NCBI RefSeq assembly: GCF_033153115.1
Contig: NW_026889796.1
Coordinates: 992,001-1,056,000 of the forward strand
Direction: 5' to 3'
Origin: Saccostrea echinata
Lineage: Eukaryota
DNA: 64,000 nt
Numbering within the stretch: the stretch's first letter is position 1; the number at the start of each line of letters is the position of its first letter. A program made the translations under genes and the position numbers. Below the pieces are notes generated by a model. It saw only the letters and a list, made by a program, of their open reading frames with translations, ran no database searches and was not told the origin of the DNA. This document shows positions 41,329 through 52,589 of this stretch, one piece after another.

Positions 41329-43879
41329 TTGCCTTTGTTAGTTCGTCAAGCTAACACCTTGAAAAATGACACCAAAATGTTGTAACCCTGCCAACATCTA
41401 TGTATATGGAAACACTATCTTCCACTATAATAAACTACCCCAAACCAGTTCTTTAATATACACCACCAACAAAATTGCTCACTGTGGCCAAAAAAATTAA
41501 ATAGCAATAAACTCAGAACTGGCAGGGTAATGGAGTGAAATAATTGCACCATTTAAATGTGTCCCTCTATTGTGATCTGCATAATAAGTATATATTGATC
41601 CTGGAACTTTTGTTTTTCACCTTTCAGCTGCAGCCTTGTTTACAGTAACCATCTGTGTTAGAATTCGGAGCTATCTAATATCTTCAGCTTCCATTGATTG
41701 GGCTCTTTTGCAGAAACTAGGTCACTGTAACAGATAGATTTTTTCCCCCATTGATCTGTTTCCACTTTTATTGCTTGTTAACGGAATCAGCCTCAGAAGC
41801 CACTCACTGATAAACACGACAAAATTAATGGTAAGATAACCACGCAAGCATGCAAGTATCAAAAAAAGTCCTGTAAATCATGCATAAATGGGTTCAGTTT
41901 CTATAAAAAAAAATTAATTTATTTGTACACCTTGTTGGCACAGGTGAAGGTGGCCTCTTTCAGATCATACCTCAAATTGTACATTCTGGTCAGATGATCT
42001 GAAAATGGTCATAAAATGTATGCCTTTGTTAAAAACAAACCCAAATCTTACAGTGACAAGAACTATATCAGTATGACTTTTGTGAAGGATTCACTCTTTA
42101 CAAGTTTTCTATTAAAGAGCAAGATCATGTATGCTCTGTGTGCATTTGCATCATACAAGAGGGTGCATGGAAGAAAATATATATAATCTGTATATCTCAA
42201 TACTATGACACTAATTTCAATGCAACCCCTCAAAAGAAACAAGATTAACCTGATACCCTTCTTTCTGTATTCTTCGGTCCTGAAGGTCTTTAATCTTCAT
42301 ACTGCCAGTATATTGTAAACAAAAACAGCAACTGATACCACTATCTAACAAAGGAGAGAACTTGAAATGTTCTTGTTCACAACAAAACCAAAGGGAAGGA
42401 ATCTTTCTTCAGTCTTATCAAAGCATGTACAGAATTCTCTCTTATTCAGGGCCAGTATGAAATGCATGTTGACACTAGAGTTAAGCCATGAAGGGTAATA
42501 TGTTGAGGAATTAGATCTATTGAAGTTATTCCTTGAAGCTATAAGCCTTATATCTGATATTTACTTGCACTCTGTGATAGTCCTGACCAAATGTTTTCCA
42601 AACAATTTTGTTGTAGCATAAACAAGACGCAGACTCCTGAAGCACCACTAATTCCCTAACCTTATTTTTAGAAAGATAAGGATATAATTAGTTTTTCTGA
42701 AGCTTCAAACATTTGTTTATTTGCATCAGTTTCATTTAGTAGATAAACTAGTCATTTTTCAAAAGGATCTCCCAATGATAAGCTGATGTTAAACCTTATC
42801 AAAATAATTTGTTCTGCAGTTGTTCAATCTATGCAGAAACCTAACTTTTTCCTTTGCTTTAAGAAACCAATATAGAATTTTAATGCAAACCACCTAGATA
42901 CTGCATATTCTTGCTTATGATATATCACATTATGTTATATCCTTCCTCTTGTTTTAAACACTGCAGATATGAAGCTGTTTCCTAGTTTTGACCATATGTC
43001 CATCTCTGAAATCAGACAGAAAAAAATGCCTGGGGGGATATGCAGCCTGAGGAAAAGCCATGTTTCCAAACCCAGCAGACACGAGACGTCTGCATGACGT
43101 TGAAAAATGGTCGATATTTGGTCACGACGTCGGTGACGTCGTGTGGACGTTTGATTGACGTTTGAGATGAAATCTTTCAATTACGTTAATATGCTGACGT
43201 CATAAAAACGTCTTAAAGACGTCGTAATTTCAACCAAAGTTTATATACATTTATCTGACGTGATATCAACGTTATTTAGACGTATGTGTGAGGATGAAAT
43301 TAATTTTTTTGTTGCATTTTCTCATGGAAAAAAAATCCAACGTTGAATTCACGTCTTATGAACGTCTTCATTTCTTTTAAATTATTTTTTTCATTTTGGT
43401 GTTCGGACGTATACGAACGTGAATTAGAATGTTCGTACATTGATGGTGATTTATAACTTAGTCATTTTTATTAATTTATCATAAAACCGGTCCGACGTTG
43501 TAAACACGTCTTTTAGACGTATATTCTTATTACGATTACCATCTTAATTATTACTATCATCTAAATTACCTTAATCGACGCGGTTAAAACGTCCTCAACA
43601 CATGTATTATCTCCTGTTGATTTCATTTCTGTTGTCATAATTAAAAATTAATTGTTTGAAAAAAATCATTTCGAGTATTTCATAAAACTATAAACGAAAA
43701 ATAAACAGACGTCAAAGAAACGTCTTATTAACATCGGGATCGCGATTTCCATGTATCATCGAAGAAGTGCGTGTACGAGTTAATGAATTTGAATTTGTTT
43801 GTTATACTTTCGTTTTTTGAGTAATTATTTACACTAACGACATTTTCTGTCCACGATACGTATTTTCAAATGTGCATTT

Positions 43880-44330
43880 GGAAAGAAGAGTTTTAAAACG
43901 CCATCTTGGTCATCTTTTCGCTTGAAATTCTGTTAAAATATGATATCATGAAAAGCGTGTGCGCGATCAGATGAGTATACGCGCGGGAATCTGTACACAA
44001 AGACCGGCATTAGTGGAAGAATTTTAAACAGTTTAACTGGCGTAAAACAAGGTAAGTTAGTTTGTAATGTGCACATTTTACTGTCTGTTTATTTGCTTGT
44101 TACAAATACTACTAATATGTTGACGGTGCGACCGTTGGGGCGAGCGCAGTGTTCACTTCATTATTATGATCCGCCTCTTCAAACCGCACGAGACATTTGG
44201 AACGTCTAGACTGTGACGTCACATGACGTCGTATGTTAGCTGCATTTCCATAAACAAAGTTTAAAAAGTGCAAATATTTTAACAAAGAACGTTTAATCTA
44301 CTATCTGCAGGCAATTTCCATTAACTTAAG
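43880..44330 (+). promoter_or_regulatory. Putative transposon promoter and non-coding leader exons
   Basis: CpG-rich; CGCCATCTTG 43899, GCGCGGGAA 43981, consensus donor AAG|GTAAGT at 44051/44052, and a 20-nt exon 44311-44330 bounded by CTGCAG| and AAG|GTGAGT. Confidence 0.55.
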
Positions 44331-45367
44331 GTGAGTTTATTTTGTGTGAATTTTTAGTTGTTGTCACCGCGTGAACGAAGTTAGCAGCGAGAACAAGAAG
44401 CGATGCATTGTGGGTCAGAATTACTGCGGAAAAAAATTCTATTGAATGAATGTGCAGTAGTCCGAATTTTCTCTTCGCCCAGGCGTTGTCGTTAGAGCTC
44501 GCAGTGACGAGCGGCGCTTCGCGCCGCTCGCTGCGCTCGCTATAATTAGTTTAGTGCACGTCAATATAATGCTAGACTAGAGTGCATGTTATTTGTTTTT
44601 GTGACCTAGATAAGGAAAATCAAATGTAGCAGGAATCTTGATAGGCCCTATTTCGTCAATATGTGATCTTATTATGGGATAAATGACTTATTTTCTAATT
44701 TGATCCTCAGATAGCTCTAATAAAAGTATGAGTGTTTAAAATAGGGTTACCAGAAGTGCATTTTATTGCTGGAGCACCTTCCCCTACCCCCAGCTGTGCC
44801 ACCCTTCAAAAACGCACAAATGCATAACAATAAAAAAATACTTCTTTTGTAATATTGCAACCCATCAAAGTAGACAACATATTAGTAGATTTTTTCGCAC
44901 CTCCCCCTTCCTTCCAAGCCCAATTTGAAAAATGAATGTGGCCAATTTAAAAATTTTCATATCGTAATTTGTAATGCAAGGCAGTGTATATATATTTGAT
45001 TCAGTAAAAATTTAAGCGTGCAAAACAATGCAAAATTTTAACTTGAAAATTGAAATTTCTGCTTTAATTTCAGTTGTGAAAATATAGAACTTAAGGTACA
45101 CTGATGTATGGTCTTTACATACAACTGATGTAGTTTGTTTTTCCCCAGTAAAGGGCTTTTTCCATATTGTGTTAAGGCCTCAATATTGAGATAAAAGAAA
45201 TTAGAATATATATGTAACATTCTCATCAGGCAGTATGTCTGATACTAGTATTTTTTCAGACAATTTGAATATTTTTAGGAATTTTAAAGGAATTTTAAAT
45301 ACAGAGTCAATTCTGAGAATTTAGATTTCCAGCAAGCAAGTTTATTTTAGTCCATTGCTTTAATTTA

Positions 45368-51245: not shown

Positions 51246-51602
51246 GCTTAAAAAAATGTGTGTTTCCAGTAACTCGATCAACCCTAATTTTTATCCTCCA
51301 ACTCCCCACCACTTTTTATTCTAAATCCGAATTTTGAGCTTTACTTTTGTTCACTGGTACAGTTTTCTCATAGTGCAGTCAGTTAAATGCATGTCTCAGA
51401 TACTGTAAAACATACATCTATACAAGCTTTTTAAAGAGTGAACTTGTTTTGTTGTCTATGTTTATTCATGAATATTTGTGTATGTATATATGACAAAAAA
51501 GAGCCAATTGAACAATTAACTGATATGCTTCCAAAATATTGCCTACATACCTTCCCAAAATTTTTTTAAGCATGTTAATGGAAACACATTTTTTATTTGG
51601 CC
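51245..51602. mobile_element. Degenerate GGCC-ended MITE at the start of the accessory-gene 3'UTR
   Basis: Inverted ends AAAAAAATGTGTGTTTCCA (~51250) and TGGAAACACATTTTTTATTTGGCC (to 51602); flanks TTA / TTG. Confidence 0.5.
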
Positions 51603-52589
51603 TTGATTACCTGAACGTTAAGATTTATATATGCTAGCTTTTTGTATTCTTTTTATTAAAACTATACATACATAAATACTATTTTTTCATTCAAATTTAG
51701 CAATTTCATGCAAATTGAAAAGTCCTTAATTAACATTGTTTGTGTGTGTTAGTACTGCTATTTTTAAGTAACATACTTTCATTATATTTGATTTCTCATG
51801 TCAAGAATATGATATCCAAGATATGCATCTGTTGAAGCAGCCTGTAAGAATTTCAGAATATTTAAGTATATATTCTGTGCTATCAGATTTATAAAAATTG
51901 AAAGAAGAGATTTTGTAGGATCATAAAAAAAATTCTATGGGAATAACCATTACTGTGTGTTCAAATGATAAACCTTTTTATTTAGTGTATTTTTTTTTTT
52001 CAATAATAAAATGATCACAAATGTACTATTGTTTTAATTTTACAAGATTGTTACTCTTTAGGCTGTCACTTGAAATGCAGTGTAGTTTTGATTGTCACGG
52101 ATATAAAGTTTAAACTGTCTTATTTGAAGATTGCAGAAAAAAGGTCTCTATCACGTTAAAACGACGTTTTTACAACGTTAATGCAACGTCTTGTATGACG
52201 TCTCAAGGACGTGAATAAATGACGTCGAGAAAACTTTCATTATCAACTACTATACAACGTCATTGCAACGTCTATAAAATGACGTCTAGGGGACGTATGA
52301 AAATGACGTCTAAAAAACTTTCATTTTCAATATCTTTTCAACGTCATTTCAACGTCTTGGTCCAACGTTTTAAAGACGTTTTAAAGACGTCATTTGCCCG
52401 CTGGGAAATTACCTGCATAATCAGCAGGACCTTTGTCTCCATAATGTTGATCAGCTGAGATGAATGGATTTCCAATAAGGCCTCATTTTGTTGGTCTGTG
52501 GACAAAGCTGGACAGGTTTTGTTCATCTTCTGACCAATTCATGTCCTATAAAAATCAATACCTGTAATTTAATAATCTGATAGCTTAAT

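Follow-up and report, generated by a model that had tools for sequence, protein, structure and literature searches.

An intact two-gene transposon with a RAG1-like transposase and a putative BEN-domain partner in Saccostrea echinata

A stretch of 64,000 nucleotides (nt) of the Saccostrea echinata genome (contig NW_026889796.1, here G000:C47, span 992001–1056000), referred to as the window, carries a single inserted unit at window positions 43071–52405, with no N within it. The unit contains subterminal arrays of ACGT-core sites, an intron-less gene for a 641-amino-acid (aa) transposase and a nine-exon second gene. It is fairly probable that this unit is an autonomous two-gene RAG1-like transposon in which a BEN-type partner protein would bind the ACGT-core sites and help the transposase.

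Insertion, ends and arrays

The 400-base flanks of the unit (42671–43070 and 52406–52805) were searched separately and were found directly adjoining on contig G000:C8, with identities of 100% and 98%. Window 13335–64000 has a colinear counterpart on C8 at ~94–99% identity. C8, ~98% identical overall, is therefore taken to be either the second haplotype or a duplicate of very recent origin. The empty site on C8 reads ccAAAAtt and the filled site reads ccAAA[element]AAAtt. Because the empty site has four A and the filled site has three on each side, the target-site duplication (TSD) is 2 bp (AA) if the element spans CCC...GGG, a figure taken from one insertion. A 3-bp TSD (AAA) was ruled out, as the empty site has four A rather than three. 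The element is mobile, intact and recently inserted. An earlier sequence-only reading had placed an intact two-gene EnSpm/CACTA transposon at 43071–52405 and had named empty-site polymorphism as a check. The clean empty site on C8, both ends, the arrays, the unbroken transposase and the spliced second gene bear out an intact two-gene element. Features are listed below by window position.

43069..43070, no strand: left TSD copy (AA), from empty versus filled site
43071..43090, + strand: left terminal inverted repeat, begins CCCAGC; 15 of 20 positions match the right end
43086..43723, no strand: left subterminal array, 24 ACGT-core sites by motif count, many triplets at 11-bp spacing
43761..44600, + strand: CpG-rich stretch, 59.5 CpG/kb versus 7–12 outside
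46282..48207, + strand: intron-less transposase open reading frame (ORF), 641 aa plus stop, from open frame, homologue alignment and model
48219..48376, + strand: GC..AG intron between transposase ORF and gene 2, joint in 4 of 4 runs, donor AG/GCAAGT
48377..48564, + strand: gene 2 exon 1 (ATG 48378), conserved N-terminal domain, from joints and homologues
48879..49001, + strand: gene 2 exon 2, from joints; aligns with homologues
49156..49200, + strand: gene 2 exon 3, from joints in run X1 only
49309..49374, + strand: gene 2 exon 4, from joints
49514..50209, + strand: gene 2 exon 5, Ser/Arg-rich repetitive linker, from joints
50321..50499, + strand: gene 2 exon 6, long helix and start of DUF4806/BEN region, from joints and alignment
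50657..50721, + strand: gene 2 exon 7, DUF4806/BEN region, from joints and weak alignment
50867..50961, + strand: gene 2 exon 8, DUF4806/BEN region, from joints and alignment
51115..51245, + strand: gene 2 exon 9, coding part and stop, from joints and alignment
52153..52390, no strand: right subterminal array, 17 ACGT-core sites by motif count; inverted-repeat pair I2 with the left array
52386..52405, - strand: right terminal inverted repeat, ends GCCCGCTGGG; the copy on contig C6 has identical last 10 bases
52406..52407, no strand: right TSD copy (AA), from empty versus filled site

The element terminates in CCCAGC...GCTGGG, which is neither CACTA nor CAC. The terminal sequences are CCCAGCAGACACGAGACGTC (left) and CCCAGCGGGCAAATGACGTC (right, opposite strand). 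Comparable ends are found in relatives. Locus L057 has the right end ...ATTTGCCCGCTGGG and L061 the right end ...GCTGGG. Loci L055, L117, L118, L122 and L130 start with CCCAGC and L124 starts with CCCAGT, all beside ACGT-rich stretches or arrays; L117, L118 and L122 have a common flank and may represent one insertion. Several relatives with transposases merely 34–48% identical have identical terminal bases and adjacent ACGT arrays.

ACGT density is 35/kb in 43071–43760 (n = 24) and 64/kb in 52141–52405 (n = 17), compared with 0.7–1.0/kb in the rest of the window. Successive ACGT sites are spaced exactly 11 bp apart in 21 of 40 cases, and the most frequent hexamers at these sites are GACGTC (11) and AACGTC (9). 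The CpG-rich stretch at 43761–44600 is a possible promoter and leader exon, with a putative GT donor near 44052. An inverted-repeat pair at 45394–45605, with 31-nt arms 150 nt apart of the CACTTGCCC..GGGCAAGTG type, sits in the long spacer that separates the left array from the transposase ORF and could be a small nested element.

The 923-Mb assembly (~33% G+C) contains one full copy of the element and one fragment. The fragment, on contig G000:C6, is 5'-truncated and rearranged, retains the last ~1.96 kb and is 92% identical over window 50535–52406. Similarity of the C6 copy stops at the same final base of the element. The left 680 bases of the element do not occur a second time anywhere in the assembly. 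The copy-number check named by the sequence-only reading thus returned one full copy and one fragment, with no sign of a recent burst. The C6 copy also has an insertion of ~850 bp of tandem units rich in aggtcaaggtcaaa (L035 2370–3218) and a 116-bp inverted scrap of the transposase ORF. The nearest other transposase relatives in the same genome are at most 43% identical.

Transposase, second gene and transcript

An ORF without internal stop spans 46270–48207 (645 aa from the frame start). The ATG at 46282 was assigned as the start, giving 641 aa, because the consensus of 39 aligned homologous sequences begins M-A-Y-x-R-x-W-R-K. Residues D181, D258, C277-E-R-C280, H477-x3-H481 and E502, numbered on the 645-aa ORF, are invariant in this alignment, which includes the sequence from the window. 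Passages of PMC12730594 describe a DDE, C-x2-C and H-x3-H pattern for EnSpm, Mirage, Chapaev, Transib and RAG1, and the window transposase carries the CMCT catalytic signature given there.

A word-indexed protein search returned 2526 homologous proteins at E ≤ 0.001. The best 120 of these are mostly ~640–650 aa long, and most have near-full query coverage at 45–62% identity. Named homologues among the matches listed are from bivalves (Ruditapes, Dreissena, Mytilus), fishes, starfishes and an amphipod, with bivalve proteins the closest named homologues among them. One 652-aa homologue (P0017) is filed under a Candidatus Thiodiazotropha symbiont bin and is most likely misbinned host animal DNA. 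Transposase_21 is found in 10–47% of members of Atlas neighbour clusters, and one Atlas neighbour only suggests a possible link to nematode DUF1258 proteins.

The transposase was modeled using AlphaFold (mean predicted local distance difference test score, pLDDT, 85.2), and the model has a RAG1/Transib-like catalytic core fold. Its top Foldseek matches are RAG1 6oes_A (E 5.5e-7), BbRAGL of amphioxus (6b40) and HzTransib of Helicoverpa (6pqx), among 48 matches at E ≤ 0.001. The structural match to Hermes (hAT) is far weaker (E 5.5e-3). Motif and predicted fold support placement in the CMC/Transib-type (RAG1-like) group.

Transcript data were Logan contigs of four public runs (X1, X2, X3 and X5), which represent at most three samples from two studies, placed over 46000–51999. 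The contigs were taken as RNA because introns are removed and the assembly has no intron-less copy of gene 2. All eight predicted gene 2 introns were seen as GT..AG joints, each in one to four of the four runs. The joint behind exon 6 is supported by four runs, that behind exon 4 by three, those behind exons 5, 7 and 8 by two each, and those behind exons 1, 2 and 3 by X1 only. From the ATG at 48378, the nine exons sum to 1,584 nt, or 528 codons. Each exon is open in its own frame, and the seven junction-spanning codons, checked by eye, are not stops. The nine-exon, 528-aa gene of the sequence-only reading, including every junction predicted there, was therefore recovered in the contigs. Contigs extend past the gene 2 stop to at least 51978, and an AATAAA is located at 52005. 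A putative acceptor at 46273–46274, before the transposase ATG, finds no support, as contigs cross it unspliced (X2 record 6, 46154–46781).

A ninth joint that had not been predicted, 48215 to 48374 (shiftable by up to 3 places), is present in four of four runs. Only when it is placed as a GC..AG intron at 48219–48376 does it have known splice-site letters. Contig X1 record 3 covers 47805–48215, 48374–48563 and 48878–49001, then continues through further joints. Because of this bridging contig and the GC..AG joint, the transposase ORF and gene 2 are placed on one RNA. The sequence-only reading had treated the second gene as a gene of its own; it is real and transcribed, but it shares its transcript with the transposase ORF. 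On the spliced RNA, the gene 2 ATG lies 12 nt behind the transposase stop with an in-frame TAG between them. Read-through fusion of the two ORFs was considered and is unlikely because the TAA is followed immediately by this in-frame TAG.

Further observations were made on the contigs. Contig depth reaches up to 255, with loose ends on both sides in all runs, at 46129–46164, 48322–48345 and 48638–48672. These stretches are probably pieces of abundant repeats, one of them within the first gene 2 intron. The last gene 2 intron contains ~35 G with one interruption (51005–51040), a run that the C6 copy has in shorter form and at which contigs break. At 49546, 50395 and 48101, all covering runs among X1–X3 and X5 have G in place of the T or A of the assembly. 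Run X5 is labeled as another organism but still matches at ≥99%, so that a second species label also covers the element or a near-identical copy.

Second-gene protein family and conservation of the pair

The 62-aa peptide of exon 1 matched 353 proteins at E ≤ 0.001 in a search of 1.84 billion representatives, mostly as single-exon fragments. When the 20 longest homologues were scanned, six reached the Pfam DUF4806 cut-off near the C-terminus (25.9–28.4 bits; PF16064 cut-off 25 bits), one was just under it (22.6 bits) and 13 had no match. Exons 2, 6, 8 and 9, and exon 7 weakly, align in order to homologues, and exons 6–9 correspond to the DUF4806 stretch. The family consensus has M-W-x-R-A-V-W at the start and L-K-Y-A-P-D-R-x-G-G at the end, and the window exons fit throughout. 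These alignments support membership of the predicted gene 2 product in a family whose full-length members carry DUF4806. A DUF4806-like product had been proposed from the sequence alone; homologues do carry the domain, but the window exons taken singly have no DUF4806 match in Pfam. A six-frame genome search with PF16064 found no match, which says little because control genomes likewise gave none.

A search with the nemertean homologue P0268 returned only itself. A search with an alignment of seven sequences returned 23 proteins, mostly of fish, and the named members are uncharacterized fish and nemertean proteins. The best exon 1 match is a public protein of 684 aa (P0121) with three tandem copies of the gene 2 N-domain. 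The sequence before these copies resembles reverse transcriptase by eye; a Pfam scan of P0121 gave no family, and the protein is unrelated to the transposase. P0121, which was not used, may stem from a chimeric gene call, or another element may have captured the N-domain.

The goldfish homologue P0265 was modeled using 20 sequences (mean pLDDT 71.5). The model predicts a confident beta-rich domain at residues 1–72, a disordered linker, a long helix at 208–233 and a helical domain at 251–346. In an exhaustive structural comparison, the top five matches were all BEN domains: BEND6 7yul_A (Z 10.4, root-mean-square deviation 1.9, 82 of 92 residues), Bsg25A (Z 7.7), BANP (6.7), NACC1 (6.3) and BEND3 (5.1), with unrelated chains below 5. 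By these matches, the P0265 model has the BEN fold, described as five helices around a central helix. In Foldseek, seven of the eight top rows are BEN domains, with weak E-values of 0.23–0.94. For the N-domain, the Tudor domain of ARID4B is a weak match (Z 4.3 over 49 residues) and within noise.

DUF4806 was held by the sequence-only reading to be a domain still in want of a function. This no longer stands, as a function has been proposed: a passage of bioRxiv 10.1101/2023.12.06.570431, which cites Pan et al. 2023, describes DUF4806 as a subtype of the BEN DNA-binding domain. According to a passage of PMC10789644, the same line of work started from DUF4806 of fly CG42854, which was found structurally equivalent to Insv-BEN. 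The published BEN subtype status agrees with the P0265 model.

Linkage of the two genes was surveyed at 80 metagenome loci with transposase relatives at 34–55% identity, which form 57 clusters at 90% nucleotide identity. Six-frame ORFs of the loci were searched with N-domain and C-terminal-region profiles made from stored proteins. The N-domain exon is found downstream in 37 of 42 clusters having at least 1 kb of downstream sequence, and the C-terminal region in 9 of 11 clusters having at least 4 kb. All N-domain matches (56/56) and all C-domain matches (17/17) are downstream of the transposase and on its strand. Neither domain was found in 153 kb of sequence upstream of transposases, nor in five clusters with at least 1.5 kb of downstream sequence. 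Linkage of DUF4806-family genes downstream of transposases, which the sequence-only reading had proposed to survey, is thus borne out.

Within this genome, exon-1-like sequence directly follows two degraded relatives, and N-domain matches on the transposase strand were found at 14 of 29 loci, mostly weak. A family at 43% identity on contig C27 has a downstream C-domain match (E 1.4e-7) and a 3' array with ~20 ACGT in ~740 bp. The genomic gap from the transposase stop to the ORF2 ATG is 24–406 nt in 19 relatives measured. Of 35 distinct relatives, 19 have an acceptor-like site no more than 25 nt before the ORF2 ATG, compared with 12% of all ATGs at these loci (binomial p ~2e-9). Because such sites are enriched before the ORF2 ATG, splicing onto the first ORF2 coding exon looks like a trait of the family. 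The survey supports the view that the lineage has conserved the two genes as a pair, and that they are not chance neighbors. The GC..AG intron joining the ORFs, the downstream linkage of gene 2 and the BEN identity of DUF4806 are new relative to the sequence-only reading.

Proposed mechanism, alternatives and related systems

The proposed lineage would be widespread in animals and would have CCCAGC...GCTGGG ends, a 2-bp TSD and subterminal ACGT-core sites about one helical turn apart. One primary transcript would carry the intron-less 641-aa DDE transposase ORF, followed by nine exons for the 528-codon protein. By homology, this protein would begin with a small beta-rich N-domain, followed by a disordered linker rich in Ser and Arg and by a long helix, and would end in a BEN (DUF4806) DNA-binding domain. 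We infer that it recognizes both ends through their phased ACGT-core sites, which it would contact on one face of the DNA, perhaps as a dimer via the long helix. By analogy with TnpA in maize En/Spm, it may help the transposase find and pair the ends. ORF2 might be translated by re-initiation 12 nt past the transposase stop. Alternatively, a splice from the 5' leader directly to 48377 could produce an RNA that skips the transposase ORF.

Several points weigh against this interpretation. The Pfam match of the transposase to Transposase_21 (tnp2) is below the cut-off (22.1 versus 28.6 bits, E 9.5e-5, residues 168–283). That family matched none of nine scanned homologues at E ≤ 0.01, and one weak DUF4218 match was seen. 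Pfam gave no DUF4806 match with the single exons of the window, over which (exons 6–9) the domain is split. Membership in the DUF4806 family comes from homologues, and the BEN fold from the model of the fish homologue. Among the 42 clusters that extend 1 kb or more past the transposase, 5 show no N-domain exon. The four runs count as RNA only by a guessed label and by the removal of introns. There is no sign of a recent burst, because the assembly has a single full copy and a fragment. Between the two genomic copies, gene 2 exons are 98.3% identical and non-coding sequence 96.3%, a difference that is not significant (p = 0.10). The transposase model also has its own helical N-terminal region, with confident helices at 91–130, which is a possible reader of ACGT.

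This last point belongs to an alternative in which the transposase N-terminus reads the ACGT arrays, and the BEN protein, with a Tudor-like N-domain, tethers or targets the complex to host chromatin or DNA motifs. The confident helices lie ahead of the predicted catalytic core, and the ARID4B match of the N-domain would suit such a tether, but its Z of 4.3 is within noise. Relatives keep the ACGT core along with the BEN gene, which also argues against this division of labor, and a single insertion cannot show a target-site preference. We regard this alternative as distinctly improbable. A role for the BEN protein as a regulator of the element is unlikely, though less so. It would bind the ACGT sites or the CpG-rich promoter and repress or time transcription, or block the transposase. 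The CpG-rich stretch lies directly inside the left array, and conserved linkage fits a regulator as well as a cofactor. BEND6, BANP, BEND3, NACC1 and Bsg25A, the BEN proteins matched by the model, are transcriptional repressors or insulator factors. TnpA also acts at the En/Spm promoter, and P-element repressor proteins are similar. However, ACGT sites are present at both ends, including the promoter-distant 3' end, a layout easier to reconcile with end recognition than with promoter control alone. No result separates regulator from cofactor, and both roles can hold together.

It is very improbable that the two genes form a domesticated or immobile pair, or that gene 2 is a captured passenger gene of the host. 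The single full copy in the assembly and transcription in several runs would fit domestication, which is made unlikely by the two intact ends with a clean empty site on the sister contig and by the conservation of the ends in relatives. A one-off capture of gene 2 is disfavored because the pairing behind the transposase recurs in the same 37 of 42 clusters and in other families of this genome. An autonomous two-gene transposon with a BEN partner that may bind the ACGT arrays in the manner of TnpA is the explanation we favor.

Maize En/Spm encodes the transposase TnpD and the accessory protein TnpA, which binds subterminal repeats, and its classical TSD is 3 bp. The window element resembles it in several ways: its DDE transposase falls in the same broad group, a second gene of several exons encodes a putative DNA-binding protein, short motifs are repeated in both subterminal regions, and the TSD is short. 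Both genes also form one transcription unit, as in the En/Spm two-component type; here this is seen in the bridging contig. It differs in its ends (CCCAGC, not CACTA) and in its TSD (2 bp, not 3). Its transposase ORF lies upstream of the accessory exons on the bridging contig; that of En/Spm lies inside a long first intron, an arrangement that the window element may also have. Its accessory protein, assigned to the BEN/DUF4806 family through homologues, has no known similarity to TnpA; Pfam named no family in any of its single exons. The EnSpm/CACTA label of the sequence-only reading therefore stands for the CMC/Transib-type transposase but not for the ends or the TSD, whose length that reading did not give.

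PIF/Harbinger transposases need a separately encoded Myb-like DNA-binding partner, usually from a separate transcription unit. The logic of the proposed partner dependence would be alike, by analogy; the transposase superfamily, partner fold and transcription units are not. Mirage makes 2-bp duplications. The TSD of the window element falls inside the 2–5 bp range of animal CMC elements, and a passage of PMC6004678 reports a 2-bp TSD for the animal CACTA-type element ENS1_Cis. Passages of PMC4079192, PMC6004678 and PMC12730594 give CMC/CMCT ends as invariably 5'-CAC...GTG-3', or as CA..TG in most cases. The CCC...GGG ends of the window element are unlike these descriptions of animal CMC elements (Chapaev, Mirage, ENS1_Cis) and Transib. 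Its closest predicted transposase fold is nonetheless that of Transib/RAG1.

The C-terminus of the gene 2 family scores as DUF4806 and is predicted to fold as in BEN-DNA complexes, like BEN proteins such as Insv, BEND6, BANP, BEND3 and LIN-14. Unlike host BEN transcription or chromatin factors, gene 2 is encoded in a transposon behind a transposase, and its family has an extra conserved N-terminal domain predicted to be beta-rich. A search for papers linking DUF4806 or a BEN domain to a transposase found none; Repbase entries, paper supplements and Pan et al. 2023 were outside this search and may already describe such a link.

The closest find was a table in the Hydra viridissima genome paper (PMC7642931), which has DUF4806 among expanded domains alongside transposase domains. 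Tentatively, the results can be joined into a broader reading, which as a whole is possible rather than probable. The DUF4806 branch of BEN domains would originally have been an end-binding accessory protein of CCCAGC-ended RAG1-like transposons, and that transposon lineage would be old and spread horizontally. On this view, the large DUF4806 gene sets reported in Hydra and the DUF4806 genes of zebrafish chromosome 4 would be genes of transposons or domesticated descendants of such genes. Because the ACGT sites that the accessory protein would recognize, one helical turn apart, contain CpG, transposition could be gated by cytosine methylation at the ends. Ribosomes would reach the accessory ORF of the two-ORF messenger by re-initiation, 12 nt past the stop of the transposase.

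Binding of transposon ends is a candidate job for a protein family that has so far had only the name DUF4806 or the status of a structural BEN subtype, and the element offers a possible origin for patchy DUF4806 expansions in animals. The lineage can be searched for by its hallmarks, which are CCCAGC at the ends, a TSD of 2 bp, ACGT sites in phase and a BEN gene behind the transposase. The layout of two ORFs on one transcript would be a second, independent arrangement of the En/Spm type, outside plants. A copy with intact ends and two open, transcribed genes that is absent from the sister contig is a reasonable start for an excision or integration assay. The element could possibly be used as a gene-transfer tool in molluscs.

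Contigs C8 and C47 differ by further indels outside the element. Window 30535–34604 (~4.1 kb) corresponds to G000:C8:12783115–12785046 (~1.9 kb), and window 53500–53543 corresponds to C8:12797166–12798672, with ~1.5 kb additional on C8. The window probably holds other polymorphic insertions.

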